From: Botryllus schlosseri
Lineage: Eukaryota
DNA: 64,000 bases
Reading direction: 5' to 3'
Assembly (NCBI GenBank): GCA_051294905.1
Contig: CM119372.1
Location: forward strand, 36,952,001 to 37,016,000
The translations under genes were made by a program, and so were the position numbers. The notes beneath the pieces are model-generated. The model was not told the origin of the DNA and ran no database searches. It was given only the letters and a program-made list of their open reading frames with translations. Below are positions 1 to 31,422 of the stretch, one piece after another. Within the stretch, counting starts at the first letter, position 1. Each line of letters begins with the position of its first letter.

Positions 1-802
1 ATGGAAACAAGAACACACGTTACAATACTTCGTGAATCATTGTATTCTCAAGACATTGATGCGTGTGGTAGGGGTTTAAGTGTAAAGTGTCGAGGAATTC
101 GTATGACAAATTGGCTTTGAGATTACAAGTTTATCTGTATTTATATAGTCAAAGACGATAGGGCTTTGGCTACGTATTATAATTTAGATATTGAAGGCAT
201 TCGGTTGCATAGTACTTCGCATAATTTCTTCCGGGTCTCAGCACTCATGCAATCCACACTTCCCTAGAAAACAGATTTAACAATTCGGAAACTCTGGGAA
301 CACTTCTTGCCATATCAATGTCGCATTAACTAATAAGCGAAGTATTTGTTGGATTACTATTATTAAAATAATTAATAATATGGAGTTTTAAGTGGCGCCT
401 GTCGCCATTGCAGGCCTTGTGCCCAGTGGACAACGATATTTTCACCGTAGGATTTGCTTCCTATGCTATACGGCAGCGATTGAAAAAGTTTTCCAACCAA
501 TATATGCTTGTTACATGTAATGATACAATCGGCGGCCGATGTAAATATTTGCGATAGGGTCAGTAGAATAATAAATGTAAGCGTTATGCTTAGCGTCATG
601 CAAGCGTCGGTGAAGAATTATTTGCTGTATAGACCCCTCCCTCCCAAACATTTTGACCAATAAAATATTTTTCCCTGGATCTTTATTTGTACCCTCAAGT
701 AAATTAAATACGTAAACCTGTCCATCGAAACACCCAACAATCCCAATAACAATGACGCATACTCATGTAATACCGTAAGCACAAGATCCATGCTATACTT
801 AC

Positions 803-3800: not shown

Positions 3801-6800
3801 GATTACGGAAATCGGTTGATCGCTGCGCATAAAGCTAGTTTTGATGTCATGATTTAACAAACTATAACAAACTACAGAAAACTATAGGTATCTATAAAAA
3901 CTGCGTACACTACGAACTCTGCGTCCACTGCGTACCATTCCTACGCGCAAATATTTCTGATGATGACCATGCCGATTATTTCCCATGTAATGGCTTCGCT
4001 AAACAATCAACGAATTATGTACCTACCATTGCAGAGCTATTATCAATATTCTATAATCCGTTTCTTAGCTGTACCGTACTAATTGGACGTGACTTTCATT
4101 TCGCAATGATGATAATTTTACCCATTACAGTGACAGTATCGTTATGAGAAGGCTGCTGTCTCATTCAACAAATTGACAACTGACAGCCAATAACGCGTTT
4201 TCGCATTATGATGCCACAGTTTACACCATTTGATTGGAAACTCGAGAAACCTCGACTAATCATCGCGCGTAACCTTTTCCAACTGTATGCGTCTCGATCA
4301 GCGGTATTTAATCACACGATGAGCCTTCTTCGGATCAGCTAACTTTATGATCTCCGCCAAAAATGCGTCCCGATTAACAGTTTTTAATTACATGATTAGC
4401 ATTCTCGCGGATAAGCTAGCTTTATTATCTCCGCCCTCATTTACATCCCGTTCCAAGAATAGGGACAACAGACTTTCGACCCTGATTTCAACAACTCGAG
4501 AACGACCAGCTTATAAATTCTCGTCAATATTTCTGACACGTTTACGTTATCATGAAATCAATGTTTGGTTTGCTTTAAATTTACAAATACATTAATATTA
4601 TTTCCACGTCGTCGGTCACCATAATATAATCTAACAATATCGAATTTTGGCTTTCATCACAATTTTATATCGTGTGGCACGCAAATGGATTAAAATGTTG
4701 AATGCGGCCCGATAGCTAAAAAGTTTGCCCACCCTTGATTTAGAGTAACGAAAGAAAATTGTTAGTATACTTACTTCATCGCGAATCTGATATGGTCTCA
4801 CGGTCGTTAACCCTATATATCTGAGTCCATACCCCAAGGTTTATACGACAGCCTGATTTGACACCAAAATAGTAAAAACTTATTATTGTTAATTGTCCGT
4901 CGATCCCGAAATAGTTGCACATTGTTACTAAATTACTTTTAAAGTACCTCATTTCCTTCAAGTAGAGTAAAAAATGAAAGATGTGAAAGTACTCATGTAA
5001 TTAGCTTAAAAAAGTGATTTTCGTTGACTCGTCGCATACTTTCAGTATTAAATTGGACGTGATATACTATGCAAATCTAATGATACGTGGCCATGTAAAA
5101 ACCGTTATAGATACACTACAAATAGCTGCAATTTTATAAAATTCGCACAACGTGATGCAATCTTTTTTTCGCAAAGTTGTTACGATAATTTCATCAGTAA
5201 AAGTTATGAGCAACTTGAAAAAAATTGCTTTACAAATTCAATCGCATAAAAATGAATCTTGCTTCACGGACTGACTGTGCTAGTTGAAGTGAAAGTAACA
5301 CACCCACTTGAGTAGGGGGCGCACGTAATTATGTAAAGCTTCCAAAAAGTCGAAGTACTTCGATATTGACCAACTCTGCGATTAACTATTGTTACCGCGT
5401 CTGTTTGATAACATCATGAATACGACGAGAAAATTATACTAGCCTGCATTACCTGTAATGGCGTAGCCTCATGGCTCGTCCGGCGAGATGCGAATGGAAA
5501 AATACTCCGAAGACTTTTACCTCGTCTAGGCCAGACTTTTCCATTCCCTGGAAAATAAATTTCAGCGTTTGAAAGTAACGTAGCCTGCCGCTAACACCGT
5601 AAACTACACAGTAGGGTTGTCCATAATTTGGAAAATCTCAAAATTTATGCGTATCCATGTCTCATTCTACGGGTTATAGTTAAAAAACGTCAATGGACCT
5701 GCAATTAGCTCACAGGAACATCGTTAACATTTGTCTAAATGCGTTTGAAAGTAGCTGCCGTAGAGCAGGCGTGTCAGCGACCATAGAACGGCAAGCAGAC
5801 TTGTAATCACGAAATCACGGCGTTTGATTGGCTAATCTGTTATGCTTCAATGATCACGACGTTGATCTGCTGGTCAAGGAGTCGGCTAACGACGTTGATT
5901 CTGAAAGCGCATTGTAGATTGGTCCGCAAATAATGATTTAGGATTAATTCAGAACATGCTGAGTTACGAAATACATGATGAACAAAGAACAGCTGCTTCA
6001 CAATCGCTTTAAATACATGACTGGGTGGCTTATTGTGAAGGTAACCGTTGTGGCCCGTATGCCTTGATTTCATTCATGGAAAGCGGAAAAATATTGGAAA
6101 GGCGCTTATGCAAGTGGCAAACGAATTTCTAGTTTCAGAGGGGATGCACCATCATTGAATACAAATATAAAACTTAACACTGACACTACTTTGTCTGATC
6201 TTATTAGGCTGTTGTCGTGGTATATAATTGAAGTCTTGAATGCTCTAAGGGCTGGATGAATCTCTCATTTATGCTTGACACTTGTCAGATTACTGCAGCA
6301 TAATGAATCATACCCGCAAGTGCTTTTAAAGTCCTCAATGATGTCGCACATGAGGTCTAAAGACGATCACAGCTATGCCGGTAGGACCAGCAAAAAGACA
6401 GTTTGCTTGCATTGCCTAGCATGTCCTTGATGAATCTTAGATCATTACCGGCTGCATCACGACTAATGCTTGAATCAAACCAGATGGACATAAAAAGGAT
6501 GTATTGAAGCGGTGTGGTAGTTACTCTTCTTCATAAATCCAATGTAAGCTACCTGGTCGGCCCACATATCTTCTGAGCATACAGGAATCTCACATGGTAT
6601 GCTGCACCAGTTTGGCGATGTCTAATATGCCTTACCTGCACCCAGAAAAGCAGGACCACTTGGCGCAATCTCAAGCATATCAGATATATATTTCCGGGAT
6701 CCATATACTTAGCTCTATAAGTTCACAATCATTCGCTGTTTCACCTCTGTCATGCCTGCAAGAGGCTATTGTTGCGCTAAATCTATCAGTGCCTAGTCTT

Positions 6801-9800
6801 AACATTAAAACATTCAATGACCAGATGTCTCATTTTATTATCAAATCATCGACGAAGGCTACAATAATGCGCTTACAGAATCATTGCCGTTAGCGAACGT
6901 CTTGAACTAGTAGAAGCACATAATCAGCAAGCCGCTGTGGTAGTGATCATTCAAGCATAGCTGATTATCCAATCAAGAGACGTGATTTCGTGATTACTAG
7001 TCTATTCGCCGTTCTATGGTCGCTAACACGCCCACTCTACGTCAGCAACTTTCAAACGCATTTAGACAAATGTTAACGACTTTTCTATGAGCTTATTGCA
7101 GGTTCATTGACGTTTTTTATCAATAATCTACAGAACGAGACATGGATACGCATCTTTTTTGACATTTTCCAAATTATGGACAACCCTACTACACAGACAT
7201 AAACTGGAAAATATGTCGTGAATGAACCAGAATGGTAAAATTAGGTGGATTTCGTAACTCATATTTTGCGCCCGCCACTTACTGTTCGATAAACATACTT
7301 TTCTTAGAAATTAATATACTATCCCATATATATATATATCCCCATTCACCTTACTCAAACACTCATCCCGGCAATATCCTCCAACCCTGTACCTGGTTGC
7401 TCCGGGAGGGATCCATATCGTAGATATCGTTTGCGAAACATCGAATAACGATGACAAAAATTGCGGAGGTTCTCGAACGAATGAAAGGCGCAAGCCAGAG
7501 CTGTCACGGAACTCTAAAGAGAATATAATTCCACAAACATGTTCGGTAAAGTCATTTCTTGCTAAGGGGACCCAATTATTATATAGTCATCACCAGTAGT
7601 ATATACCCCTTGGCAAACCAGAATATTGACATGTAACCGGATGCGGAAAAGAATTACCTCTTCTATTTTGGAATAATCGAGTTTATTAATACTTTCAACT
7701 GCTTAATCAAATGGGTATGTTTTGGGTTGCTTCTGCGTCTACTTCGATTTGTTGTTAAAAACTAATTACTTTTCTACTTTATGTTTTGTGCAGTAGAAAT
7801 AGTTTTAGGGTTTGTCATCATGACGTTTACGACGGAGATTGTAATTAATACCAAGTGAATTAAGCACTGTGTCATGATAACGTGCCTATGTTTTTGAAAA
7901 CTTAATTATTAATTACTACTGACAAATACTTGTGTTCTTTCTAAACTTCATTTTCTATGTTAACTTCAAGTAGCCTTGACAAGACTTGGTAGTCGCTACT
8001 ATAATTTGTAAATGAAAATAAAGGTGTGGCGGTAAAATTAATTCTCCTAAAGTGCCAAGTATGACTAAGTTTACCCCATGTTGAGCTGTACAATTTGAAA
8101 CAAACGCGGAAGGATAGTATGAAAACATACTTCTAGTGGAATTGAACGAGGTCATGGTTTATGAATTTCTCATTTTCTCCATTTTTCAATGTTTTACCAA
8201 TTGGCTGCGCTACATGTTACTAAAAGTTGATTTACCAGGATTACAGCTGCTTTAATAAGGGCAGGGTGGTCGCACTAATATCTACGCCACTTCGCTCCTA
8301 AAATTCGTAATAAGAAAGAAAATGATAGAAATCTGGAAACTGATTCCAACTCCGACCACACCAAAAGTGCGACTCGGGCTCGGACCACAACGTGGCCACA
8401 AATTTTCCGAATTCAAACACCAACTCCTCAGCCGACTGAATCATGACTGTTCCATTCATAGAATGTGCCATACACAAGTAAAATTATGTTGTTTAGGTCA
8501 AAGTATGACGCAGTGTGCAGAGGTTCGTATACGCAGGGATCATCGAACGCGCAAAGGGTGAACCAGCTCCCTTGGGTGACGAAGATAGGTTTCTAGGTAA
8601 GATAGAATATTACCCAGCCTCGACCTGTTCAATAAGCATTTTCCACTGCATTCTCTATTCACTAATATTTCTCATTCAGCAAATCTTTATGATGATAAAT
8701 GTTCTCTTGGATTCCGATGTATATTAACACATGCGTGGATGTGGATTGGGAAATAGCACACATTTAAATGCTACTCTTATTATGTCTCATGACTTGACGC
8801 AGCTTCGAATACAATTACGAATCTGCTCTCGACATTGAAACGCGTTATGTTAGTTGTCGAGTCCAGCAGATTGTTATCGGATCGTCGATACTACCGAGTC
8901 GATATCACACTTTGCACGAAATAGCGGTATATGTTATTAGACTGCCACAGCTAGACTGGAAAATTGATCTATTATTCCATAACTTTCACGCAGAAGAGGT
9001 CAACGTAGTTATCGCTGGTCACGCCGTACATTTCGACTGAAGTACAAGCATAAGTAAAAGTAGTAATTTCCAAAATATTTATAAGTGAATATACTTGACC
9101 TGGTTTAGCATAAAAACTGAAAATTGTTGAGGTGAAGTATAAACAGTTTTGAAATCATAACCAATTTTTGTAATTAGCGCAACTACGCCAAACCTACTTG
9201 AGTAGCCTAATCTGAATCTTTTGAAATATGCCTGCGATATTTTAAAATATCGGCTGTATATACCGGGGTTATCAGTTATTTGTTTTATCGGTATCAGCTC
9301 GTCCAATTCGATATTCTTCAGACTCTAGATTAGTGGTTCCCAGCCGGTGGAGAATTCCACACTGGTGGGGAATTCAATTTCTGGTGGGGAATAGACGCAT
9401 TGTTAAACATTATATACAGGATAGTCTTCATATTTGTGGAGGCACATGGGCGATTGCCATTACCAGTTAACTGCTCTGGAATGTATGTACCAAAAATGAT
9501 AAATTGAAGGTGTCCTCAGTGGACGCCTAAATATCTTTTTTGGGGAGTTTGTCCTCTTTTTATCTGAGAAGGATATAATTGCCACGAAACATGCGACTCC
9601 AACGCGGCGAACATCGGAGATTTGTAAAACATCGGTAGGCGAGTCAAAGTGATAACCTTTTTTTAGTCAACACAATGCTATCAGTCGAAAAGTTTTCAAA
9701 ATCACCAGTTTTCTTGGAGCTTTCAGAGTTGATAAAAAGTGTCCTCTTTTTAGGATGTCAAAATATGGTGGCCCTATTTTAAAGAGTATATAAGTGTTTT

Positions 9801-12800
9801 GGATAGAGTGGAATGAAGACTCGGAATAAATCTGAAGTGGGGAATGATGACAAAAAGGTTGGGAACCCCTGCTCTAGATCGTTGGCATTGCGGGAATGGA
9901 TTACCTCGTTTTTCGGGGTTATCATAGTGCATCTCAATCATGACATATTGAGGGTGGCTGGTGGCTCCACCGAGAGGGAATCCACTGTTTTCCGGAAATC
10001 GAATACCGCTTGAACCTACGGCCCACCCTCCTAGCACTTTGTTACACCCCACGCTGAATGGGTGAACCTGTTCGTAGCACTTGTAGTCGATCTCTAGTTG
10101 CTCCTCTGTCTGTAGATGACAAAGGTAAGAGCATAAGGAGTGATACATCGCACTGCGGTAGAGTTGCATTTACTCACCACATCTACATCGCATAGATATA
10201 TAGTGGCGTGGTGTACATTCTTTTCATTTCCCTTCTGCAACAGTGGCCGGATCTGTAACACGATCATGGCTATTGTCTATTTTGACATGTAGTGTAACTA
10301 CCGCATTCGATCAACTTTGAAGAGTTTCTTGAAGGCAAAAAACCTCAATACACCATTGAATATTCATATTGCAATGAACACACCTATTTTAGACCGACAC
10401 TCGTCAGAGCTAATCATCAACAACGGTAAAGAATTGGGCAGGACCTTGCATATCTACCAAAGTATCGCTAAGTATGACGTCATCGGCAAAGAGATCGCTT
10501 AGGCCCAAAGGGCTATTTTGCATGATACACGAACTCTTTCTGTTGGCTGGAACCAACAAGATTGGCGAATTTTGATAAAGGTCGACTCCAAGGCACACAC
10601 ACAAACTTTTGAACGGCATCTTGCCAGTATAGAATTACATGAGCAGTTGGTACAATGAAATAAAATCGAAAGATTCACATTTAGTATATCCGATATGATT
10701 TTCTCACAGCAAAATCACAGTATTGCTAACTTTTTACAACCACTTGCAGCATTACAACATTGGTCGCTACTGAACAGCTGTAACAACAATTTGAAACCAA
10801 TCAATGAATTTCCGCATCACCCTGCGCGACGTAACCAGAAGTGGCCAGACACGAATTACTTCTACTTTTTTGAAGTACTCAAGTAGTTATCCTCTACTTC
10901 TAGTACTTACTCAATATAACTATTTTTTCCGCTTCTTCTTTTACTATACAATAGTTTATGATTTACTTACTTACTTTTCGCTATTTAAAGTGTGTGAAGT
11001 AGAAGTATTATTATATTCTTCCAATGAGCGAGAGAGAAAATGAGACGGAGAAATTTAGGGACTTTTTTCGCGGAGTAGCAACAATAATAATTTAATTATC
11101 ACAAAAGTTAAGGAAAGCTCATGATTTTCGTTGTGCTTCACGCGAAATGAATATCAAGTGACAATGAATGTTTTCACAAAGTGTTAGTCAGTATTATTTA
11201 GGTAGAAGGTTCTTTTCAAACTGTATTGTCGTCCATACGACATGTATCATCGCAGTCAATATGGCTCATAACAATATTTGAAACTATGTAATCGTCATCT
11301 AGCATTCTAGTTGCACAGTGCACAGCGAGTGTTTAAATAGAAAAAAGTGGTACTCGACTTTTTAGCGTTAGACTTTTTAGCGTCAATCACCGTTGAAACT
11401 GTATGGACAAAATACATGAAATGTATTTCCTCTTTTTAAATATTGTATTTTTAATTCTCTTTATGCACGGTAGTTACAGAGAGGTATTGCAATTAATCTG
11501 AGTTCTTTTGTCAGGAGAACATGCACGTAGAAGTTTAAAATTACGTAGTAAAACTCAATGTAAATGGGATTTCACGAGATACCATATTGTTGTTTCACGT
11601 AACAATCATCGCGCAAATCGGTAATGCCCCATTCTGATACAACTTGGTATTGCTTTTTGCCTCAACGGGCCTCTTAATACGACATTAGCTGAAATGGAGC
11701 TCCGGAGTATATAAAAGTATGAGCCCCTTTTCCAAGCAAAACTGTCATGTGCATCCCACGATGCGGCTTAATTCTTATGTGTAGAAACTTTGTACTGAGC
11801 AGCACGAACTCAGCTCATTGTATCATCCGAAGGGCTCAGTTCCCGCCTTTTGACACCTCGTGAGAACGTATTTACGACTGCTTCTCATAACTACTTATTT
11901 ACTTGCTAACTTTAGTAGATTTTAGCGTCGCTACTTCTACTTTTACTTGAAGTGGTTTTAGGATGTATTTAAAATGACTTCTCCTACTCGTTCTTGAGTG
12001 TATTTTAGTTTCGATACTTATACTTCTATTTGAACAGGTTTCTGAACCTCTTTGGCTACCTCTGATGTAACTGATTCGATATCATATTTGCAATGCTTCC
12101 TACGCTCCTTGTTACGTCAACATTACCTGCAGCAAGAACCAGTCAATAATGTACACGTCGAGAGATAAAGTCTCGCCATCTCATCCGTGTAGGCGGTGTC
12201 TTATGAAAGCCTAGAAGTGAGCCGTGCTACAAGTCGGCAGCTACAGAATAAAAAGCAAGGATATGGGCCTGGTGTAAATGACCAGAATAGTTGAAAAAAC
12301 CCATGAGCACCTCAAACAACAACAACAACTCTCTTGAGGTTTGTGTATCTGACTATCCCGTGTTTAGACACGCATCAACTATATTTCTTGTACTATGTAA
12401 TATAGAGTGTGAATCTTGTCGATATCGCCACAACAAACACTTAGATCCTAAATTGAATATAACTTAGCGTCCTGTTCGTCATTCCCGCGGACTTCACATT
12501 ATCCGTCCCACGTGTGTTTACTGTGTTAGTTAGGATATTCAGGCTAGATAGTGCTGACGGATACTTACTTCAGTAATATAAATTGTTTCATTAGCTTCTG
12601 CGACTTTGATGAACTTGCACAAATAGTATGTTTCGGTTGCGGGAACAAAAAATTCATCAGGACCGACGTCCGTATACGATTCCTGTCGAATTTTCCCTGA
12701 ATTATATTGTAAGGATGAGGTTTCTGCCAATCTTCGTAGGTAAAAGCGTGTTGTACGGTGGTATGACGTTACGGATCTAGTGGGAAACATTTATCAAAAC

Positions 12801-21800: not shown

Positions 21801-24800
21801 CAGAATTTTCGTCGCGCTCCGCGCTGTGGATATTGAGTTACCAGTGTGATTTGTCGAAAGTATCGATGAATATAATTTAGGTAGCGGGTTGGCGTGGTTG
21901 CGTTCACACAGGGATATCTAGATATAAGCTACACAGTATGACATTTTTACGGCCCACTATATTTTTTATTAACGTTTACTAATCGCGCAAAGTGTTTGCA
22001 CCGTATCCTATACAAGTTCTCCGTATTGCTCTTCGACTAAACTACGGACCGTATAATATGGGGGAGGGATGGCGCCATACTATGCTATTTTCCAAAATCT
22101 GCTGTTCGAGAAAACAGATGATAAATATCGCATTTCCATATCAATACTATCATTTTCATCCCATGATGTGGACGAATGCTTATGCCATCAAAAATTGGAT
22201 ACCTGCTGGTATGCACCAATATGAATCAAGCTCGTCACCTTTCGCTTAGCTGTGCACCTTTTTACAATCCATGTGAACGAATTAGGATCGTTTTCACAAC
22301 TACTTACTTACTTAAGTACTTTTAAAGTCAGTCAATTCTACTTCTTTAAGTAGTTTTAGGTTGCTTATGGAAGAAGTACTTCTACTCGTACTTGAGTAGA
22401 TTTTTTCGTCGCTACTTCAACTTCTACTTGAGTAGCTTTCTTGACTACTTTGACCACCTCTGGTGGGTTGTCCAACCCTGATAATGAGTATTTACCGTAC
22501 AATGTAGAGATCTTATATTGAGAATATATGGACATGTAAGTGCACATATCAATTAATTTCGAAAGAATGCAACTTTCAGTGAAAGGAAAGACAACATTTA
22601 TATCCCCCATGAACGAGCTGCAATAACTTTTACTTAGGGTTGGTGATACATCCGTAGGGTTGGCTACGTCTTAAATGGCGAGGGCGATTATCTATGAAAC
22701 AGAGCAATGTGGGTCGGATTGATTCCACAGTAATTATATTACAAACGCTGTTGTATTATTGCATATTCAGAGTTGCAGTAATTAATGTTGGGAAATTCAT
22801 TGGTTATAAGCATTATATCAAATCCATTAAAAATTTATAATTATTATCGGTGGGGCTCACCTGCAGTTCTGAACTCAACGGGATATATCAACCTCAGACT
22901 TCTTCCTCCTGCGCGAGAATAAGGCGTGTAGGTGAAAAAAAAAATTTCCGTGCTTAGTATCGATAATTACCTCTATTTCGGCGGTGATAGTCTTGGAAGC
23001 CTATGTTGTCATCTTCCAAATCTTCCTTTCCGTACGCCCACAGTATTATATATGTTGCCGGCTTCAGTAGCGCAATACCAGGAGTAAATCATCGGTAATA
23101 CATATATTTACCTATACGGCACAGGGATCAAGTATGGAAATCAATGGACGGGACAAGTACAGCGTAACAACGTAAACAGCGTATACGTGTAACCTCAGCC
23201 GATATCAATACCGGACAGAGAGAAGGGTCATCAAATTGGTACTTTACGGCTGTTGAGGTCTGGAATTGATTATGTAGCCCCAAGATGCATTGAAAAAGCA
23301 AAGTGGCATATTGTATGGTGACTTTAGTATTGTTTCCGAATAATAATTATGTTTTAATTACATTGTGTATCTAAATCAGGCCAATGTTATTCATTAGGAT
23401 TCTCAAGATGGGCCTCTTTAGCAAGAGTCACTTTCGTTCTGGGCAGCAACAACAACATAATAATATTGCCGTGTTGAGTAATATAATAAAGTCAAGCTAC
23501 GTAAACCTGACGATAGACCTAAATTACTACCCTTAAAACTTAGAGATATGTAGAGGAAAGCTGGAACGAAGGACGAAATGCAAGATGTGACAAAAAATTT
23601 GATATGTATATGTTTATGCATCGTACACAGAAATTCCGTCGGGATCGTCGATGTATGTGTGTTTCTTGGTTCACGCGCAACATCATGGCTTTATCATTTT
23701 AATTTATTTACATGCCTTTATTCCATCATTTGTTTGCTTTAATAAGGAACTAGAGCGATACTATATGAATATGCATGTTCAAGAATATCTATATGGGTCA
23801 CCTTTTGTAAATCCATATCATTTGCATTGCAAGTTAAACGCTTTCGTCGTATCGTGACCGCTGTATGCGTGCCATTCTCCCATCCACCCACAATTTCGAC
23901 GTTTTGTTCTTCGTCCACAGTAGGCACCCCATTTCTATCGGAATGGCAGTCCTATAAAAAGTACAAGTAGGGAATGAATACTGCTTTTGTGGATGAAGTC
24001 TTCAAGTCGATTTGTCATTGTGTTGCTGATTTCGTTAATTGAAATAATTTGCCAATAGGAGGACACAAGCATAGTAAAGACGACATTTCTGGTGCGAAAC
24101 AGAATGTGATACTATTTCATGATATCTGCTATGTGATAATATAAGTGCCATTTTCTACTTGAACCGATGGGGATAAGTCTTCTAGGGTTGATTATGGATA
24201 ATAACGGTGGGTGGACAAAGTGGTAACACTTAATACGACTAAATGCTTCGGAGTCAAGGATCGTGATAAATTAACGTGAACGGACAATGTCCGTCGGACA
24301 TATGAAACATGCAATAGAAAAACCTACTATATAATTAGTATAAATTGGCCTTATATGTGTTAATGAATTTCTTATTTTGCCATGAATCACAATTAACCTA
24401 ACAACATTCGTTCGATTGCTAGGGTTTACACATCCCTGATATATATTTGTACTTCACCATAGCGATATAATGGACAGTACACGCCACTCGCATGGATTAC
24501 GGAGCAACCGAGTAACACCAGTCAATCGCTACAACAAAATTTAGATAAATACTTACGAATACATACGGCTGGCCGCCTTTCATACCCATCATGAGGATAT
24601 CCGCTCCGTTCATGGACGCTGTGCGGCCGAATCCAAGTCCTATCCAGCCCGTGCTGGGCGCTAAAATCTAATTTTTAAATAGATACATCACTAATTTGAA
24701 TACAGGATGATCGGTTTCTCGCATGCCTGCATCGTAATCGTCGTCTCGTCGAAATCCCAAAATAGGGTCACCCTTGTGTCTTCTTCCAGTACTGATCTAT

Positions 24801-27800
24801 ATGGCAAGCCCAGTTCATAATCTCCAGAACCAATAAGTTTAGGAGAAAACACTGTGTTGATTGATGATTTCTCGGTCGTGGTTGACTCTAGTTTGAACAT
24901 CAATTGAGTTGCAAATAATGAATAAATGCGTCATCACTGTTAGTACAATAGGAGTCAAGTTTTAAGCTAACTAAATGTGTGACACTCGCGGAACAATAAA
25001 AAGTAACTGAGCATACAGAAAGTAGACGATGAGCTATATAAAACTTTCAAATACACGCACGCAGATTACGATCTTAGATTCAGCATACCTCGATGCATGA
25101 TTTTACTGGTCGTTGTCTGAGTTGTTGTGGATGTCTGGATTTCGGCAATTTCTGATGAACCTGATGGCGACATACCCAGGTAAATAAACATATCTTATAA
25201 AGTTTGATAACGAAAATCTGATACGGAAATAAGGTGTCCTGCCTGGCATTGGAGATTTATGTATGAGATATGCGATCATGCACATTACGGATGATGACGA
25301 TATTGTTTCCTGTACGATGTAGCATAACCCGATCAAAATCAGACGATCGTATGGTACTTGTAGTTAGGGATGCATTCAGAACAAACGATGGTTTGAAATA
25401 CTTTGTTTAAAACATGTTTATAAATAGCGTTTTGAGCGGATGCCTAAAAAAATATTAAACGTCGTATTAAGTATACCATAATTGGAAAAAACTTTCGGAA
25501 AACATGTAGTATATGAGCGTACGGACTATTTGCTCCTAACATATGTGATGTATACGATATGAAGTTGCAGGAACCCTCGGAATCGTCGTTGGTTCGACCG
25601 TTATAGTACGTATAAATTGATCATTAGTACGGAATGGGTGTTCTGAGGATGATGATGATGAACGCTGACCGCAAGATTACTGCATGACGATGGAGTCCTG
25701 GTTAAAGATATTTTTGGTAGGTTCATGACAGTGGTCAATGCCGATCCACTGTGACGTCACAATTAAATAAACGTGACGTCAAGACGAGAAAAAAGACAAT
25801 AAAAAGTATATTTTCTAGAAGTACCATGTTTTGAACAAGTTTGTTTTAAATCGATTTTGGTTTTAAATGTAACGTTACTTGAAGCGCGTTACATGACCTC
25901 GCCACACGCAGCACAGCGTGTGTTAAAAATTCAAAAAATTTCTCAAGCACTCGAAAACTTTTTACGATGTCGGATAAGCGGTCATTATACGACGGTATGC
26001 TCGGCGTAGAGTTAACACAGAGACCTCCTAAGCCAGACATACAACGTTTATGTTATCAAGCTGATGTTATAGTTCCATTGAGACCAAAGGAAAGGAATCG
26101 AAAATTATCTCGGCTAATAACTGTTTGCCCTGTGTTCTCCGTCTTAGTCCATAATTCGCTTCATGGCCGGGCATCAGGAGAACTGTATGCATTTTCCTTA
26201 TATTTTGTAACGCATTGTCAAGGTTTGACATCATTTTCATTTTCATTTGCTTACCCGTAGACGCCAAACGAAGAGACAATTCATCATTTAGTATGGCGCA
26301 TTGATGGTGTTTTGCAACGAACCCTATTGGTGCTTATTTCTTCATGCTAAGACGTTAATTTTGTCTAGCATCTAAACTTCGCACATCCACCCTACAGATG
26401 AATAGGTATTTCAGCTCCGAAGTAGCGATAGTTTTAGCAAACGAATCGCGTATGTAATAGATATTGACAAACTCACCGCTCATTTCGTCTTTTTGTCCGC
26501 CCAAAAGCGCCATGTTCACAGCACCTAACAGGAAACTCTATGAATGTTAATTATATTGTCCTCCAATGAAGTTACGCATCTGAATAACCTCTATTACGTC
26601 GATGATAATCGACAGATCTCCATTCCCGATCTTTATCGGACCCGCCGAATGCCCACAGTATTATCATTTCTCCATTCTAGATCAAAGGTATAACGACAGG
26701 GTGTAATAGGTCTGGTTCATCCAACGGTAATAGTTATGAAACAAATGGTGACCATTTTAGTACATTCTAATGTTACCTTGGAAAAGAACTCGAATTGATC
26801 ACATAAACTAGATATCAATAGTCCCAGGTCCCAGGTGGGTACACACAAACGGATAAAGCATACCCGATATATATATGGGGATGATAAATTGCGTTGTCAA
26901 TTGATAAGCATAGAGAACAGACTGCTGGTATTGGCACAAAACATCGTTCTCAGCAATCAACGAAACAGGCCAATTCACGACATGAAAACATACTCAATCT
27001 GAGACTTTCTACCGACGATTACAGCTTGTATTTACAAGGTGGTAGATCATCTCTCGAAACTGTAGGAGTAGGGTCATGGTATCTTCGTCGAAAATGCTAT
27101 TCATCCTTATATCTCTATTGATAGCCGCTTCAAATGAGCCACAAGTAGATTTCATGTGAAGTTGAGTGATTGTTTATATCTGTGTGGTAATCTTATTGGT
27201 CAATGACGGAGCGGGGAATTTCAAGTGAAATGATTTGTTTATGCGACCCGCGATGATAACTCACAAGCGTTGTTCTGCATGTGAAGGCAATATTACTCAA
27301 TCGTGACAGTTGTCTGATACTTATTCATGAAAGTTGTTAATTGACTTGTTTGCTATAACACTAATGACTTTCCAGAATACGTTTAGATAACTTAACGACT
27401 CCTTCCCTTGAAATATACCTTCAATATCAGATTAGCAATAATTCAATATTTACTCAACAGATTATCTGGGCAATGTATCACTCTCTGGTGGTATAAACAA
27501 ATCGTTTTGACAGTTATCGAGCAAGAGAAATGACAGTGCATCATATGTCCTGGAAAGCTCGCTGATACATTCTGCACTTACGGCTATACTATTGTCCCAA
27601 ACATTGTTGACTGCCAGCGACCTTTTCACTTTGATTGTGGTGTGAGTCGCATTCTCGCTTCCGCTTATAATTTCCACGTTCTGCTCCTGGTCGACAGTCG
27701 GTGCGCCGTTACGGCGTGCGTAACAGTCCTTGAAAAGAAATTCCATTTATACATAGTTGACTCTATAATTCTAGTTCTAGTTCCACTTTGACGAATTACA

Positions 27801-30800
27801 GCGTACTACTGGTACTACTGTTTCTATACTGTAGTTTCCATTATAATTTTAATTTGATTTTTTTTCCTGAAATATTGCAAGAGACCTGCACGGTGCGTAG
27901 AAGCGAGTCAAACTTGGTGGACATCCATTTGCCATTTTCTTGATGATCAGAATAAACCCTGATTTAATATGAACTATACTTTATTTTTGCTGTTTCTCTT
28001 TCTAGGGAGATAATTCATTTTCTAGTTTCTAATTTGGATAAAACTGTACAGCTATCATTTTATTTCTAGTCTCTTATGAAGAAGCTGAATATTTTTCAGT
28101 TGTTCAATCCTATTTTCATGCAGGTCGTGACTTACCCAAACGTACGACTCGCCATCCCGCACACCCCCTATAATCAAATCCGCACCCGCCATTGTTTCAC
28201 CGATTCCAAATCCGATTCCCACCCATCCCCTAGTCTTTGCTGTCATCTGGAACGAAAGGATTTCAATTTTAAGCTTTACGGTTACTATTAGCAGAGGTGG
28301 TTGAAGTTGTTGTTGTTGTTTTATTACCGCATATAATTGGCGCTTGCAACATCGCGGTTATTTGCGCCCACACAGTAAATTTCATAATCGCATAATGGCA
28401 TGTCTTCATGAACTTGAGTCTTTTTCGGCTCATTTGCTGCCTCCTTTCACGAGTTCGACTCTCTCTTCGTCTGGGCTTTACAATGCGCTGTATTACAGCG
28501 GGATCGGCGATGAGGAGCCCAGATAAACCTCCGACACATAGAAACATGGCAGAGCTGAGACTCGAACCATCAACCATCGATGTCGTGACTACAGTGTTTA
28601 AGCAACTGCGCCACTCGCTTCCCCGGGTGGTTGAAGTATTCATCGTTGGAATTCAATAAGAAGTAGAATTACCGCCGTATATGTCTAGTTTATTGTAAGT
28701 AGAAGTTTCGATTACAGAGACATGTCAAACCTACTTCATGTGGAAGTACGAAATGAAGATTTGAGAAGTACTTAAGTAAATGCCCCCAAATTGTAGATTT
28801 TGATAAGACCTCGCAAACTTTCACTAGTCGATCAAAGGTGACTCCTTTCGAAATGGTAGGTTGCTCAAAAGTAATTTTTTCTGAATTCCGGGAATTCACT
28901 GATTAAATTAATGGGCTGCCTACAAAAGCGCTGCACAGTGCACATCAAAATTGGCTCAATTCCAATCAGTGGAAGCCAAAACAGAGACATTTCGAATTTT
29001 TAAATTAATTGTAAAAATTTAAAATAAAAACAATTCAAATTTTACTGGCATACCATGAAATTGCTAAGTTGCCTAAAACGACGATACATACCATTTTCTG
29101 CTCTCCTTCAATCGGTTGAAGCGAAGTTATTGCAGTTTTTGATTTGCAAAAACGGCATTAACGGTGGGTAGTCCCAGACTTATGAAAGAAAAACTCAAGA
29201 GACTTCGCTTCTGCGGGTTCGAATTGCGTCAAATTTGTTTTGCACCGTTTTTCGAGGAAACTTGACAATTTCATGTTGTTTACATTAAAATTTGAAAAAA
29301 AATATGTATTTTTCAGTTAATTCAAAATTTTCAATTGACTTTGCGTCGACTTCTACTGGCCGGAATTGAGCGCAAGTCGGTTTGCAGCGTTTTTTTTAGG
29401 CAACTAAACAAATTAATCAGTGAATCTCCGGAATCCGAAAAAGAGTTATTTTTGAACAACCTTAGTGCATATTTTCCACTAACGCAAAACGATAAGGCCG
29501 CTGCAAGTTGATCCTATTTTGATAATATATTAAGCTACTGTGATTCAGGATTTATTTTACCAATTCGTTCGACCTCATTTTTCAAGATCCGACGTCTAAA
29601 AAGTAAGTAGTTGGACCTGAAAATTGTTAAATGGAAGTTAAAGTCACAAAAGATAACCTCTCGAGTAAGTATTGCAATTAGGCATAACCTAATTTCGTTC
29701 TCCTAAGAAGTAGAAGTACTTGGTTACTGATGACCGCTGACAATTTCTATGAAGGTCTCTAGAGTAGGCATTTCGCCGAAACCGGACTTGCTGATTTCAT
29801 ACAATCAAGTCAATTCCCACCAGACCACTACACCTCTACACTTACTAAAATAAGCTACGTTATTGCAAAGATATGCCATTGGTAGGTCACATGTTAGGGA
29901 TGTTGTGAGCGCGAGGTTCAGGTTCGCATTCTGTGACTGAACCTCGGAAATTCGGAGGTTCGGGTTCGCAAACGAACTTTGGTAGGTCATGTGCAGTGAA
30001 CCTTTTTTCATCTGATACATTTTTTGAGTCATTATAACGTTTTTGATTAACATTCAGTGCAGTTTAACTTCTAACCACTCTCCGCAGGAAGCTGGCAGCA
30101 TGAAAAGAAATTCAGCACTGAACGAGCTTGCACGTTGCCAATTTCAAAAATGATTTGCTTCGTTAGAAATGCTTGCTAGAAATATTCAGGCTTTTGTTAT
30201 TGCATATTTAGTGTTCATCTGCTGTGAGCTTTGCCTACAATAACGCAATAATAATAACGTAATACACCGCATGTCGGTATTGTGTCAGCGTAATTAACAT
30301 ATCAATTATTGACATCAACGATATTGATGTTTAAAATGCATCGTTGTCTCATGTAAGAAATCTAAGAGGGCGTACGCGATCTATCATGATTCGATATGCG
30401 TATTGGGTAGGGTTACCATACGTCCTCCCTTATGAGGATTTATCCTCCTTTTTCAGGTTTTTGAGAATGTCCTCCAAGGACGCCAAAATGCCCACCTTTT
30501 TGAGATTTTGTCCTGTTTTTGAGAATTTTGGTTAAATATAGGGCAAAATTCGACTGATATTCGGTAAATCAGCAATGAAGTAACGCTCCGGCGGCTATTT
30601 CGGGAGCTGAGCCGGAAAGTTGACCTTTTTGTTTAGGCAACCAACTGATTATGCGAAAGAAAAACTGTATTTTGGATGCCGAGCGAGAAAGTTGACATTT
30701 TTTTATTTTTAGTCAACCGATCGCGAGGTGAGAAAAATTTACCATTTTTTCAAGATTCTCCTCCGGTATTCTAAGTTTGAAAATTTTAAAAAGGTGTCCT

Positions 30801-31422
30801 CCTTTCCCGATTCCAAAATATGGTAACCCTTGTTATGTGTCATAAAATGAAATCTGTCAGATTTGAAGAGTTGGCTGCAGTTTAACTTGTTTATGAGATA
30901 ATATCTGTCGCTACTATAGAAACTGGTGTTTCACTCTGATAAGTAGGCGCTATCGATGTACCAATAGTCTGACCGCACCTTAAAGAATACATGCATAGTG
31001 CGGTCTAGCTTAGACCATCAAGGCTTAATCATATTTTCCATCGCAAGTCCTCGTCGAGATTATTGGGAAAGCGACGGAAGATATTGATTTTATGGAATTA
31101 TATATCCTCTGATCGTTCCAGTCGATACATTTGGTGAGGGTTAAAATGTCAGCGTGTACTTCAGCATTGTGGCCTGAGTCGTCGGAAATGTAGGTTTGGA
31201 ATTAGCAATATCACGTCATGCGACGTCACACGTTCACATTCGTGTTCATATAAAACCGTTCCAAAAGGAAATATGACTTACCTCGATTTCAATTGTACTG
31301 CTGTCATGCGTCCATTTCAACAAGAATCCAGGAGATAATGCTTTGGAATTATGCCATTCATGTGATAAAGTACTTCCCGTTAACACCAGGGAAGCCACGC
31401 ACGCAATTACCAATCGTCGCAT
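803..31422 (-). CDS. MOXD1: DBH-like copper monooxygenase (MOXD1-like) paralogue A: signal peptide + 2x DOMON + Cu type II monooxygenase N and C domains; 3' end runs off the window
   Basis: Hand-built exons (minus strand, phases compatible, no stops, 2154 nt = 718 codons): E1 31282-31422, E2 28136-28246, E3 27582-27728, E4 26589-26676, E5 26477-26524, E6 24727-24887, E7 24557-24667, E8 23802-23951, E9 22971-23061, E10 22861-22908, E11 12569-12696, E12 10178-10252, E13 9905-10109, E14 7350-7513, E15 5453-5547, E16 2800-2956, E17 2644-2737, E18 803-942. Motifs: MRRLVIACVASLVLTGST (signal), GWVGIGFG..MAGAD, NVHH, IEMHYDNP, DSSGLRL, FHSHLAGR, YDFNYQE, GDSLTLECDY, GGLPTTSEMC. Symbol is a family-level (-like) call, not tested orthology. 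Confidence 0.93.
3526..4737. mobile_element. Charlie/Buster-type hAT MITE (GGCCCGC subterminal motifs)
   Basis: Ends CAATAGAGGGCAAAC / GTTTGCCCACCCTTG; TSD ATTTAAAG / ATTTAGAG. Related ends at about 2120-2160, 35930-36100, 39270-39310 and 40070. Confidence 0.6.
5612..7188 (-). mobile_element. Internally deleted hAT (hATm-like) transposon with transposase remnants
   Basis: About 220-bp imperfect TIRs starting TAGGGTTGTCCATAATTTGGAAAAT; perfect TSD CTACACAG (5604-5611, 7189-7196). Minus-strand remnants RQTGAAYHVRFLYAQKI (about 6565-6615) and IWFDSSISRDAAGNDLRFIKDML (about 6418-6487) resemble the PGAxHxARW and APxNDL motifs of hATm-type transposases (recalled motifs, not searched). Confidence 0.75.
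10836..12064. mobile_element. MITE family M1, long diverged copy
   Basis: CAGAAGTGGCCAG..GGCTACCTCTG ends with CTACTT arrays; TSD only approximate (ACGTAAC / ATGTAAC). Confidence 0.6.
12171..12329 (+). mobile_element. 5'-truncated SINE family 2 copy, (AAC)n tail
   Basis: CTCGCCATCTCATCCGTGTAGGCGGTGTCTTATGAAAGCCTAGAAGTGAGCCGTGCTA matches the reverse complement of 34470-34530; ends in AACAACAACAAC. Confidence 0.65.
14288..14650 (+). mobile_element. tRNA-derived SINE, family 1 copy a, with (ATA)n tail
   Basis: A box TGGCGTAGTTGG, B-box-like GGTACGAATCCC. Head and core match the copy at 28308-28625. The 13-bp TSD ATATGGGAATAAG is at 14275-14287 and again at 18694-18706, beyond the Dong element. 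Confidence 0.8.
14651..18695 (+). mobile_element. Full-length R4/Dong-clade non-LTR retrotransposon (single ORF, RT + restriction-like endonuclease) inserted in a (TAA)n tract
   Basis: Preceded by (TAA)7 at 14629-14649 and ends in AATAAAGAG-AATAATAATAAT (18675-18695). About 80 bp 5' UTR, one 1229-aa ORF, about 265 bp 3' UTR. (TAA)n targeting is established for Dong/Rex6-type R4-clade elements. Confidence 0.9.
14733..18422 (+). CDS. Reverse transcriptase / RLE endonuclease polyprotein (1229 aa, uninterrupted)
   Basis: N-terminal KRHRWSKEEYKEIMRCYF (R4/Dong-type). RT motifs WKAAGPD, NYRPITCL, WIDYKKAFDSVPH, GIFQGDSFSPLLF, FMDD (16851-16862, aa 707-710), YKYLG. CCHC CRMC..HLMSGC (from 17844). 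RLE motifs RHN, RPD (18099), IELAVP, KYSKY. Confidence 0.95.
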   Translation: MPAKRSGYIAPGRTRRGTKRMTPEDSSTPTTQEHQREDISQHGACATPNCGSQNSSAAKEKKKRHRWSKEEYKEIMRCYFLAKFENSAGVTEGTFQKWKERTNNSPTMTANTLATMRRCVIKNKKLSEQELAEIEGEMCNKNIENSEALELQFGQDDLNPQQSLDDPNIAEVELQNTTGHPNESITPNDGDIDTELELEIKNQIIDRMKSTLNVNDRVQLPDLQITKKLKTDIAVANKILTETILPATLNDKQGERPQCPLTTINNLIYSTAAVISERHCKIPRTVNKKRGRHTPAWQRRIENKIAKLRYDVAILSELKKGNVSRKVKNKVKRIELEHQTKLQSTEKVTMLQEELKMRICAKAQRLKRYKKRETQYRQNLLFARKPGQFFRMMKQKSNQKITSSKIPATADVESFWKKIWETKKLHNSNANWIQDLHTDHLQTPEQQWSEITKQEIKEALKSSLNWKAAGPDQIKNFWLKKLTATHNYLAVTYNELLSSTSSHEIPAWFTQGITYLIPKNENTRDPKNYRPITCLTTMYKTLTKILAKRSYKHLENLLPPEQKGCKEGALGCKDHLLLDKTILENCKRRHTNLSMAWIDYKKAFDSVPHTWILKTMRMYKMNPIIIRFIENSMKNWHTKLLIKHDQGETETCTIQICNGIFQGDSFSPLLFCLSLAPLSELLRKNETGYVMKKAANSEGQKIHHLLFMDDLKLYAKSDTDLNNQMKIVHEFSEDIKMKFGLDKCSKLTIRRGRATSTGDMNFKMDETITELNAEDHYKYLGICESDNIKHAAMKSSLKKEYISRLKSILKTELNSKNKINAINSLAVPVLRYSFGVVNWRKDEIKKLDTKTRKLMTMHHMHHPKSDTQRLYIPRKKGGRGLQEIEQTFKTEIIGLSQYINNSDNIYCKLIAQEDKQRKTKSLSYRHDKYAREVNLETANLYTAENTVAKPTTIAKAARVRYKNATLKMRETIWESMPLHGQHKKLTSQPHVDELSWTWLSSSGLKPASEGFIFAAQDQSLPTKYYRKRILKQNTDGKCRMCHNQNETVAHLMSGCGALAATEYTWRHNRIGHYIHLELCKHFNITTSTKNWYDYSPAPVTENEQVKILWDVPVITDREIRSNRPDIIVKLKKKRECLFIELAVPADHNLLQKESEKYSKYADLKMECEKMWRCKINIVPIVIGATGVVSKKLMRHIQQIPGNVRFDMIQKITLLGTVHILRKALNAPLD
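19572..21298. mobile_element. MITE with CAAGGCTGTGGA TIRs and CCGACT subterminal arrays (hosts the partial M1 copy)
   Basis: CAAGGCTGTGGA / TCCACAGCCTTG; ACTCCG repeats at 19600-19715 and 21178-21290; TSD not clean. Confidence 0.55.
20160..20689. repeat. Partial M1 long copy (about 530-bp direct repeat of 21940-22462)
   Basis: Collinear similarity from ATTTTTACGG(T/C)CCAC to TGACCAC(A/C)TCTG. Confidence 0.7.
21533..22462. mobile_element. hAT-type MITE family M1 (CAGAGGTGGTC termini, CTACTT/AAGTAG arrays), long copy
   Basis: TIR CAGAGGTGGTCA / TGACCACCTCTG; perfect TSD GTGGGTTG (21525-21532, 22463-22470). Confidence 0.8.
28308..28625 (-). mobile_element. tRNA-derived SINE, family 1 copy b, (AAC)n tail
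   Basis: Head GGGGAAGCGAGTGGCGCAGTTGCTTAA..GGTTCGAGTC; core matches the 14288 copy. 12-bp TSD GGTGGTTGAAGT at 28296-28307 and 28626-28637. Confidence 0.8.
28857..29464. mobile_element. MITE with about 120-bp imperfect TIRs (TAGGTTGCTCAAAAGTAA / TTATTTTTGAACAACCTTA)
   Basis: Inverted arms 28857-28977 vs 29345-29464; a related left end TAGGGCTGTTCAAAAATAAC is at about 58173. Confidence 0.6.
29895..31250. mobile_element. Dispersed TAGGG-terminus repeat family (GAACGCGAACC/GGTTCGCG ends), interrupted by a 30408-30830 MITE
   Basis: Collinear with 59167-60050; right-end pieces also at about 36100-36350 and 42956-43300. Ends approximate. Confidence 0.65.
30408..30830. mobile_element. MITE with TAGGGTTACCATA termini and GTCCTC motifs
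   Basis: TAGGGTTACCATA / TATGGTAACCCT inverted ends; a related right end is at about 9500-9777. Confidence 0.65.

Follow-up and report, generated by a model that had tools for sequence, protein, structure and literature searches.

Two DOMON domains in a Botryllus schlosseri DBH/MOXD1-type monooxygenase gene: a probable case of exon-block duplication

How did a copper monooxygenase gene of a sea squirt come to carry two DOMON domains in a row? To our knowledge, the characterised members of the DBH/MOXD1 family all have a single DOMON. The locus considered here lies in a 64,000-nt stretch of the Botryllus schlosseri genome (assembly GCA_051294905.1, contig CM119372.1, positions 36,952,001 to 37,016,000), which we call the window and within which all coordinates are given. 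It comprises the 5' half of gene A, a transcribed gene for a sea-squirt copper monooxygenase of the DBH/MOXD1 type; a second such gene, gene B, lies in the same window. A first-pass annotation, made from the letters of the sequence, had proposed that the second DOMON arose by duplication of a block of five exons, and that this happened before the gene itself was duplicated. The findings below bear out the proposal in its main lines, correct it in several details, and push the event further back in time.

What kind of gene is this? The layout is a signal peptide, a first DOMON (DOMON1, or D1), a disordered Ser/Thr-rich linker, a second DOMON (DOMON2, or D2), the CuH and CuM catalytic domains, and C-terminal helices. 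In genes A and B, individual exons match PF01082 (Cu2_monooxygen) at 63.5 and 57.7 bits and PF03712 (Cu2_monoox_C) at 38.2 and 42.3 bits, all over the curated cut-offs. Translation of the exons shows the copper-ligand motifs H-H, H (in M-H-Y-D-N-P), H-S-H and E-M-C in both genes. In the closest relative, P0153, which is 65% identical and was used in place of the window's own protein for structure and for residue-level alignment with DBH, these motifs align with the DBH ligand positions. By domains and ligand motifs, both genes fit the copper type II, ascorbate-dependent monooxygenases (DBH/MOXD1/TBH/PHM), and their products are predicted enzymes. Exons E2, E3, E7 and E8, taken as single-exon fragments, each match PF03351 (DOMON) at 25-33 bits, and the full-length relatives P0153 and P0209 match it at 166-173 bits, in two stretches each. 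Human DBH (PDB 4ZEL) and the MOXD1 proteins of vertebrates and amphioxus are alike in the copper-ligand motifs and in two cysteines to which we return below; the tunicate genes differ by the added N-terminal DOMON on its linker. The doubled DOMON makes this a variant form of a known enzyme, not a new kind of system.

Table 1. Exons of genes A and B, in window coordinates
Feature	Position	Strand	Evidence
Gene A E1, 141 nt: start codon, signal peptide, first DOMON1 strands	31282..31422	-	ATG and GT donor read
Gene A E2, 111 nt, phase 0-0: DOMON1	28136..28246	-	Pfam DOMON E 7.7e-8; transcript joint 27727/28135
Gene A E3, 147 nt, phase 0-0: DOMON1, lacks C154-like Cys	27582..27728	-	Pfam DOMON E 4.1e-7; transcript joints; alignment
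Gene A E4, 88 nt, phase 0-1: DOMON1	26589..26676	-	Transcript joints 26676/27582, 26522/26587
Gene A E5, 48-nt mini-exon, phase 1-1: last DOMON1 strand	26477..26524	-	Transcript joints on both sides
Gene A E5b, linker exon, 72 nt, phase 1-1, Ser/Thr-rich	25089..25160	-	Transcript joints 25158/26475, 24887/25089; translation
Gene A E6, 161 nt, phase 1-0: linker and first DOMON2 strands	24727..24887	-	Transcript joint 24667/24727; homology to 3' end of E1
Gene A E7, 111 nt: DOMON2, counterpart of E2	24557..24667	-	Pfam DOMON E 2.8e-6; alignment; transcript joints
Gene A E8, 150 nt: DOMON2, counterpart of E3, Cys aligning with DBH C154	23802..23951	-	Pfam DOMON E 1.7e-5; alignment; transcript joints
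Gene A E9, 91 nt, phase 0-1: DOMON2, counterpart of E4	22971..23061	-	Transcript joints 23061/23802, 22907/22970
Gene A E10, 48-nt mini-exon, phase 1-1: last DOMON2 strand	22861..22908	-	Transcript joint; loose end at 22860
Gene A catalytic exons, approximate; last exons off window	800..12696	-	tblastn with P0153; translations; Pfam Cu2_monooxygen, Cu2_monoox_C
Gene B DOMON1 block, 111/147/88/51 nt: E2 61877-61767, E3 61155-61009, E4 60577-60490, E5 60410-60360	60360..61877	-	Homology; AG..GT flanks
Gene B DOMON2 block, 176/111/150/91/51 nt: E6 58973-58798, E7 58734-58624, E8 56710-56561, E9 55804-55714, E10 55648-55598	55598..58973	-	Homology; AG..GT flanks
Gene B catalytic and C-terminal exons, approximate; C-terminal hydrophobic helix	42331..53687	-	tblastn; translations; Pfam

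The two DOMON domains of gene A are encoded by matching sets of exons (Table 1). E2-E5 mirror E7-E10, as the first-pass annotation had it: the exons correspond in length, and the introns of the two blocks interrupt the alignment at identical positions and in identical phases, namely 0, 0, 0, and then 1 on either side of the mini-exon. Splice flanks of these DOMON exons are AG..GT in genes A and B, the sole exception being a GC donor after gene A E6, where the E6|E7 intron is a 59-bp GC-AG intron whose CT..GC ends are seen in three contig sets and in raw reads. For E6 the first-pass model is corrected to a length of 161 nt, a start in phase 1 and this GC-AG intron. Three sets of spliced transcript contigs, each from its own study (X1, X2, X7), and the raw RNA-seq reads of X24 contain every gene A junction from E1|E2 through E9|E10; for E1|E2, the loose end of an X2 contig at 28248 matches the 3' end of E1. 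All ten exons of the first-pass list are in place, and an eleventh had been missed: the 72-nt linker exon between E5 and E6 (E5b), whose joints are present in X1, X2 and X7 and in 6 raw reads, so that the stretch has 11 exons. E10 is spliced onward to the next exon near 12696 (its loose end is placed at about 12695).

One contig of 1,325 nt takes in E4 to E10 and continues into the catalytic part. The two DOMONs thus share an mRNA, and an artefact in which two genes had been joined is ruled out. Might the likeness of the two blocks instead reflect gene conversion within the gene? Within a gene, D1 and D2 share 38-46% identity, as against 59-86% for D2 and 50-82% for D1 across genes, and a tree constrained to join D1 and D2 of gene A costs 97.5 lnL and is rejected (AU p = 2.5e-53). 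Nothing was found in favor of conversion or of a joined-gene model, and taken together they have a negligible chance of being the explanation.

A very short intron before the last mini-exon had been pointed to as a feature kept in both copies. The sizes are as was said (64 and 62 bp in gene A, 79 and 65 bp in gene B), and yet they carry no information, since the E6|E7 introns are as small (59 bp, and 63 bp in gene B) and the homologous introns of Styela clava measure 382 and 129 bp.

The likeness of the blocks extends upstream into E1 and E6. Their 3' ends are homologous and in register with the exon end (hhalign E 1.5e-5), with a score that none of 5,000 column shuffles reached. The match that had been noticed between the 3' parts of these exons is therefore genuine, and it is detectable over the last ~16 residues only.

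Is the doubled block peculiar to gene A? Gene B carries both blocks as well, as had been stated, though its exon 1 was searched for within the window and not found; it lies about 2.2 kb past the window end, at about window-equivalent 66164-66271. A partial 5' copy with E1-E3 also lies upstream of gene B. The Botryllus schlosseri genome has at least six paralogues that retain both DOMON blocks, and the exon lengths 111/147/88 and 111/147-150/91 recur in six paralogues and one partial copy. At least five complete genes form a local tandem array, with a sixth paralogue 5 Mb distant. The exon boundaries of gene B are placed by homology and splice signals, and the transcript evidence described above covers gene A.

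The same arrangement is present in a second sea squirt. Styela clava has proteins named 'DBH-like monooxygenase protein 1 homolog' (XP_039261999.2, XP_077973209.1 and the products of two other loci). They were predicted automatically in RefSeq and have an identical domain order: two DOMONs, Cu2_monooxygen and Cu2_monoox_C. Proteins predicted to have the double-DOMON layout are thus already in RefSeq, while a literature search for double or tandem DOMON domains in tunicates or in MOXD1 found no description of such an architecture. The Styela homologues are 38-40% identical overall and do not have the 72-nt linker exon. They share the ten-exon DOMON region and its phases, including the signature of an 88-nt exon in the first block against a 91-nt exon in the second. 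For the gene of P0209 the exons are 144/111/147/88/45/167/111/147/91/51, with phases as in gene A.

Single-DOMON genes indicate where the introns came from. The exons of a Styela single-DOMON gene are 162/111/153/91 and those of amphioxus MOXD1 276/147/183; the latter has two DOMON introns in common with the tunicate genes, at both ends of the 147-nt exon and in phase 0, and the E1|E2 intron and those before and after the mini-exon set the tunicate genes apart from DBH and MOXD1. Since introns of the block are present in single-DOMON genes, they were inherited and not made by the duplication.

Did the doubling precede the duplication of the genes? In a tree of 116 columns, D1 and D2 form separate clades with support of 98/93 and 97/78, respectively, and when the flanking strands are added (157 columns) the values are 93/89 and 99/96. 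Each clade includes sequences of Styela clava and P0153, so that the D1 and D2 of the Styela homologues group with the window's D1 and D2, respectively. The separate clades that the first-pass annotation had expected from four DOMON sequences are thus seen in a wider sample. Of the two outcomes that it named as refuting, clustering of the two DOMONs of one gene and exon boundaries at odds with the transcripts, neither was observed for gene A. The doubling then precedes the split from Styela clava, and with it the whole-gene duplications that gave the tandem array and the sixth paralogue; the age first claimed, older than the duplication of two genes, is correct and too modest.

One might ask whether the layout arose in parallel, from the same exon block, in the Botryllus schlosseri lineage and in Styela clava. 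On 116 columns, independent duplication in the two lineages is not rejected (AU p = 0.10), for a group that was named after the first tree had been seen. A nemertean, Tubulanus polymorphus, has a DBH-like monooxygenase protein 1 of 791 aa with two DOMONs before the catalytic domains and the cysteine discussed below kept in the second DOMON only. Its DOMONs group together and with a fly sequence, apart from the tunicate clades, which suggests an independent duplication there and that such a layout can arise more than once; its first DOMON is long-branched and its placement unsure. Against a parallel origin in the sea squirts, Styela sequences lie in both the D1 and the D2 clade, and independent duplication in the Botryllus schlosseri lineage is rejected on 157 columns (AU p = 0.005). 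The two species also share derived features: the 88 versus 91 nt exons, a phase-1 linker exon with a length of 2 modulo 3, and loss of the cysteine from DOMON1 only. We regard a parallel origin as very improbable.

Which of the two domains keeps the older place in the protein? DBH has a disulfide between C154 and C596 (PMC4846438). By way of the homologous Cys of P0153, the Cys in the R-L-T-C motif aligns with Cys115 of chain 4zel_A; this corresponds to C154 on our inferred offset, in which residue 40 is the first of the chain. The first-pass annotation held that this Cys is kept in DOMON2 only; it is present in every DOMON2 and in every single-DOMON MOXD1 examined, and missing from every DOMON1, and the exons of the window itself confirm this column. 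The double-DOMON proteins have also kept the C596-like Cys (C812 in P0153, C797 in P0209). It was placed through a multiple alignment of MOXD1 proteins, and not directly against DBH, because the C-terminal 163 residues of P0153 had no match among PDB sequences. The DOMON2 Cys and its partner are both conserved, and a disulfide like that of DBH is predicted. In the AlphaFold model of P0153 there are two beta-sandwiches, D1 and D2, with pLDDT ~90, and residues 173-236, which form the linker, fall below 50. Superposition of DOMON2 and the core on DBH 4ZEL_A gives a target TM of 0.86. The model thus presents DOMON1 as a separately folded domain tethered by a disordered linker. The cysteine pattern and the model agree with the view first taken, that DOMON2 holds the ancestral structural position and DOMON1 is the freer copy on a Ser/Thr-rich linker. 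Both domains are under purifying selection, with dN/dS of 0.13-0.23 for D1 and 0.09-0.19 for D2.

What event would account for all this? Probably, D1 and D2 descend from one DNA-level duplication of an exon block that occurred once, before the last common ancestor of Botryllus schlosseri and Styela clava, in tandem and in place, leaving DOMON2 in the ancestral position and DOMON1 tethered. The duplicated block would run from the 3' part of exon 1 through three exons (111, 147 and 88-91 nt) to the 45-51-nt mini-exon, with every intron position and phase preserved. In the scenario we favor, a tandem duplication took in the 5' end of a single-DOMON gene, beginning with exon 1 and ending in the intron that follows the mini-exon, and the downstream copy of exon 1 became the internal E6 by splicing at an acceptor some 20 nt before the former start codon. 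An E6 made in this way would start in phase 1 and have a length of 2 modulo 3. Its signal-peptide part may then have decayed into Ser/Thr-rich linker, so that this portion of the linker would descend from a signal peptide. DOMON2 would have stayed in its ancestral position on the catalytic core and retained the Cys whose DBH counterpart forms the bridge to the C-terminal region, and DOMON1, on losing the bridging Cys, would have become a tethered, independently folded domain.

The linker plus DOMON unit is a phase 1-1 cassette, and this raises a second possibility for the source of DOMON1. Styela clava has multi-DOMON proteins, LOC120338410 with 3 DOMONs, LOC120337231 with 6 and LOC120338002 with 12, which have neither catalytic domains nor a C154-like Cys. 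Their genes have the cassette as in the double-DOMON gene: a phase-1 exon, exons of 111-114, 147-153 and 88 nt, and phase 1-1 mini-exons. It is repeated 3 and 6 times in genes near the double-DOMON gene. Might DOMON1 have been acquired ready-made from such a neighbor, by unequal recombination or exon shuffling, with all cassettes ultimately derived from a tunicate MOXD1-type DOMON? DOMON1 groups with the multi-DOMON repeats and not with DOMON2, inside the tunicate DOMON clade, and shares with them the 88-nt exon and the lack of the Cys, so that it could be an imported cassette; the Styela multi-DOMON genes are within 70-150 kb of the double-DOMON gene, and the partial E1-E3 copy upstream of gene B indicates that such pieces move locally. 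The grouping is weakly supported, however (81/72), and it reads equally well as transfer from DOMON1 to the multi-DOMON genes. The 88-nt exon would also follow from one 3-nt change in either copy, and the in-register homology of the E1 and E6 3' ends is what one expects if exon 1 lay within the duplicated unit. Import of a cassette is accordingly an unlikely origin for DOMON1, though less so than a parallel origin, and tandem duplication in place is the reading we prefer.

Transfer in the other direction leads to a more speculative proposal, one we put forward as a long shot: that the cassette made by the duplication seeded a styelid family of secreted multi-DOMON proteins, with 3 to 12 or more repeats, beside the monooxygenase genes, and that DOMON1, with a Met/His pair, acts as a heme-type arm of the copper enzyme for electron relay or ligand capture. 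One Met and one His are conserved in the DOMON alignment, as sequence columns only, and the similarity to the heme-type DOMON structures 1D7B, 4QI3 and 6JT6 is at the level of the fold only (E about 1e-5).

What does a second DOMON mean for this family of enzymes? The double-DOMON layout was already to be found among predicted proteins, and the phase 1-1 cassette and its reiteration are new here. Selection has maintained a second, tethered DOMON in six or more paralogues, apparently from a time before the two sea-squirt species diverged. The contrast between a core-bound DOMON, presumably Cys-linked, and a free one in the same protein could be used to probe the role of the domain, whether in heme or ligand binding or in regulation. 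The locus is also a well-documented case of domain gain by exon-block duplication, with inherited introns, a putatively recruited copy of exon 1, and proof from transcripts, and it hints at the way in which repeat proteins come to be assembled from phase-symmetric cassettes.

The window (C2:36,952,001-37,016,000; genome 495 Mb) carries on its minus strand two tandem DBH/MOXD1-like copper monooxygenase genes, A and B, whose exons are listed below. Their catalytic exons give Cu2_monooxygen and Cu2_monoox_C matches with the full set of copper-ligand motifs, and domain content and ligand motifs place the gene in the copper type II monooxygenase family. What is new in it is the second DOMON. The first-pass annotation had proposed that this domain arose by copying of a five-exon block before the gene itself duplicated, citing mirrored lengths of E2-E5 and E7-E10. 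Those lengths are correct, the same block is read in gene B, and in alignment the intron columns and phases are identical across both blocks (0, 0, 0, then phase 1 on each side of the mini-exon). Exon 1 of gene B, absent from the window when searched for there, lies about 2.2 kb past its end. The last gene B exon, 42331-42552 (-), has a terminal hydrophobic stretch resembling a C-terminal membrane anchor; in P0153, the closest relative found, the modelled chain also has a helix at its end (residues 833-851).

Exons of the DOMON regions in genes A and B and in comparison genes
Feature	Position and length	Strand	Basis or remark
Gene A E1	31422-31282, 141 nt	-	sequence reading
Gene A E2	28246-28136, 111 nt	-	sequence reading; Pfam DOMON match
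Gene A E3	27728-27582, 147 nt	-	sequence reading; Pfam DOMON match
Gene A E4	26676-26589, 88 nt	-	sequence reading
Gene A E5	26524-26477, 48 nt	-	sequence reading
Gene A linker exon E5b	25160-25089, 72 nt	-	reads; phase 1-1, Ser/Thr-rich
Gene A E6	24887-24727, 161 nt	-	sequence reading
Gene A E7	24667-24557, 111 nt	-	sequence reading; Pfam DOMON match
Gene A E8	23951-23802, 150 nt	-	sequence reading; Pfam DOMON match
Gene A E9	23061-22971, 91 nt	-	sequence reading
Gene A E10	22908-22861, 48 nt	-	sequence reading
Gene B	DOMON1 block 111/147/88/51; DOMON2 block 176/111/150/91/51 nt	-	sequence reading
Styela double-DOMON gene P0209	144/111/147/88/45/167/111/147/91/51 nt		phases as in genes A and B
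Styela single-DOMON gene P0158	162/111/153/91, then 179 nt
Amphioxus MOXD1 P0167	276/147/183 nt
Styela double-DOMON and two multi-DOMON genes (L037, L039, L040)	OZ123521.1, 10.71-10.89 Mb, within 190 kb		one exon cassette throughout

Assembled contigs from three different studies, together with raw RNA-seq reads, were mapped to 22800-28400 and back the exon boundaries of gene A. All predicted junctions were recovered as minus-strand GT-AG introns, save the intron after E6 (24726-24668, 59 bp), which is GC-AG in 4/4 runs, whereas the homologous gene B intron (58735-58797) has an ordinary GT donor; the E1|E2 junction was seen as a loose end agreeing with the E1 end. A 1,325-nt contig runs E4-E5-E5b-E6-E7-E8-E9-E10 and then further downstream, and since it includes exons of both blocks, both DOMONs are on one mRNA. 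The exons originally listed stand, but E5b had been missed; it is constitutive in the reads seen, and a search of gene B yielded no homologue. E10 is spliced onward to an exon starting near 12696, so that an intron of about 10.2 kb (12697-22860) separates the DOMON2 block from the first catalytic exon.

Several features of the introns may be recorded here. An AT-skew anomaly lies at 14-18 kb, within the 10.2-kb intron. Over the intronic stretches 28223-28400 and 25605-25791, depth is very high for either strand (73/55 for raw RNA reads, 228-315 for contigs) and loose ends are numerous; these stretches probably represent an abundant transcribed repeat outside the gene A mRNA. Open frames at 31028-31201 (-), in gene A intron 1, and 59645-59872 (-), in the gene B E5-E6 intron, have in common the peptide-like stretch S-I-S-S-V-A.P.I-S-T-R-T, a likeness in sequence that points to one repeat family.

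How was the copied block joined to the gene? The 3' half of E1 had been said to match that of E6. For the exon ends this is borne out: when the last 25 residues of E1 (from seven genes) and of E6 (from six) were compared as profiles, they aligned in register at the exon end (hhalign probability 80%, E 1.5e-5), and 0/5,000 column shuffles reached the observed score. E6 is 161, 176 or 167 nt, against 141-144 nt for E1, and has a phase-1 start and a phase-0 end throughout; the E6-E10 unit is phase 1-1 and measures 561 nt in gene A, 579 nt in gene B and 567 nt in Styela, each length divisible by three. E6 lengths and phases fit a tandem duplication with a recruited exon-1 copy. Exon 1 through the mini-exon would have been duplicated in tandem, and the downstream exon-1 copy would then have been spliced in via an acceptor just upstream of its former start codon.

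When did this happen? A careful maximum-likelihood analysis of 73 DOMON sequences places the DOMON1 copies of this genome, P0153 and Styela in one clade (98/93) and the DOMON2 copies in a second (97/78), both nested in a tunicate-only DOMON clade, with paralogue branching essentially alike in the two. Each clade spans the paralogues, P0153 and Styela, as expected if the block was copied before the gene. Clustering of DOMON1 and DOMON2 of gene A as one clade is rejected (AU p = 2.5e-53). Might the duplication have occurred independently here and in Styela? Holding all this lineage's copies together was not rejected on 116 columns (AU p = 0.10), but with the flanking strands added it was rejected on 157 columns (AU p = 0.005; supports 99/96 for DOMON2, 93/89 for DOMON1), the test group having been picked with the first tree already in view. 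Independent support for the tree's order comes from gene structure, as the 88 versus 91 nt difference recurs in the Styela double-DOMON gene, along with a phase-1 linker exon whose length is 2 modulo 3. Comparison with single-DOMON genes shows that the introns flanking the 147-nt exon, also found in amphioxus MOXD1, are old chordate introns, and that the remaining DOMON introns predate the copying of the block in tunicates. The block was therefore duplicated as DNA, introns included.

A whole-genome search with P0153 as query, followed by a scan of the neighbourhood, found a 210-kb tandem array of five complete double-DOMON genes and a sixth paralogue 5 Mb off. In all copies the exon lengths 111/147/88 and 111/147-150/91 are retained, as are the AG..GT flanks. 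A partial copy, E1-E3 of the DOMON1 block only, lies about 17-20 kb upstream of gene B exon 1 (C2 ~37,034,683-37,037,745, window-equivalent 82683-85745, minus strand), with 88% protein identity to gene B and dN/dS 0.19; no E4, E5 or DOMON2 exons follow. In paralogue G1 (C2 ~36,845,000-36,868,000), the E1-E3 exons assigned to it are 17 kb upstream of the DOMON2 exons, and E4 was not found. The low dN/dS among paralogues (DOMON1 0.13-0.23; DOMON2 0.09-0.19) indicates that both domains are maintained by selection, with DOMON1 more diverged (50-82% identity among copies; DOMON2 59-86%). D-C opens the 147/150-nt exon (E3, E8) of both DOMONs in all paralogues, e.g. at 27723-27725 and 23946-23948; its Cys, the only one in DOMON1 and without an obvious partner, is missing from vertebrate and amphioxus MOXD1 and from Styela DOMON1.

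Which DOMON holds the ancestral position? In human dopamine beta-hydroxylase (DBH, 4ZEL), the C-terminal part is fastened to the DOMON through C154-C596 and also contributes the strand that completes the DOMON sheet (PMC4846438). The sequence alignment of P0153 to DBH covers DOMON2 and the core, and pairs the R-L-T-C motif Cys with chain Cys115, equivalent to C154 provided that the chain begins at residue 40. The annotation had assigned this motif to DOMON2 only; a C154-like Cys indeed occurs in all of the DOMON2 domains and single-DOMON MOXD1 proteins examined, and in no DOMON1 or multi-DOMON repeat. The C596-like Cys column is conserved among double-DOMON proteins. The P0153 AlphaFold model (pLDDT 81, pTM 0.68) has two confident beta-sandwiches and a linker between them (residues 173-236, pLDDT < 50); it matches the whole 4ZEL chain at target TM 0.86, with DOMON1 left over. 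Cys pattern, 4ZEL match and model thus support the proposal that DOMON2 keeps the ancestral position, with DOMON1 free on a linker.

The main rival to in-place duplication is that DOMON1 is a cassette transferred from a multi-DOMON gene. Styela has two such genes on the chromosome of its double-DOMON gene, at distances of 70-150 kb from it. The cassette that they share with it, repeated three and six times, is a phase-1 exon followed by 111-114, 147-153 and 88 nt, closing with at least one phase 1-1 mini-exon; E5b resembles these short linker mini-exons. The repeats carry an 88-nt exon as DOMON1 does, have no C154-like Cys, and are weakly placed (81/72) beside DOMON1 in the tree. DOMON1 may have seeded the Styela multi-DOMON genes, or it may have come from one of them. 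In this genome, DOMON-like exons about 0.7 Mb downstream (C2:37722512-37722682 and 37737427-37737570) match a Styela three-DOMON protein (E ~1e-7) and may belong to multi-DOMON genes.

An E3/E8 exon profile was searched against 1.8 billion proteins, with further searches seeded by the hits. Double-DOMON monooxygenases were found in only three other places: Styela clava (three loci, automatically named "DBH-like monooxygenase protein 1 homolog"), the P0153 transcript, about 65% identical to the window's exons, and the nemertean Tubulanus, which seems to have reached the layout independently. The window's own proteins were absent from the protein databases searched. Styela also has DOMON-repeat-only proteins of 3, 6 and 12 copies. 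The architecture is already present in Styela RefSeq predictions, and we found no paper on it. The first-pass annotation is confirmed in what it observed and supported in its reading, with the corrections given above, and the genes are a sound example, of moderate interest, of domain gain through exon-block duplication.
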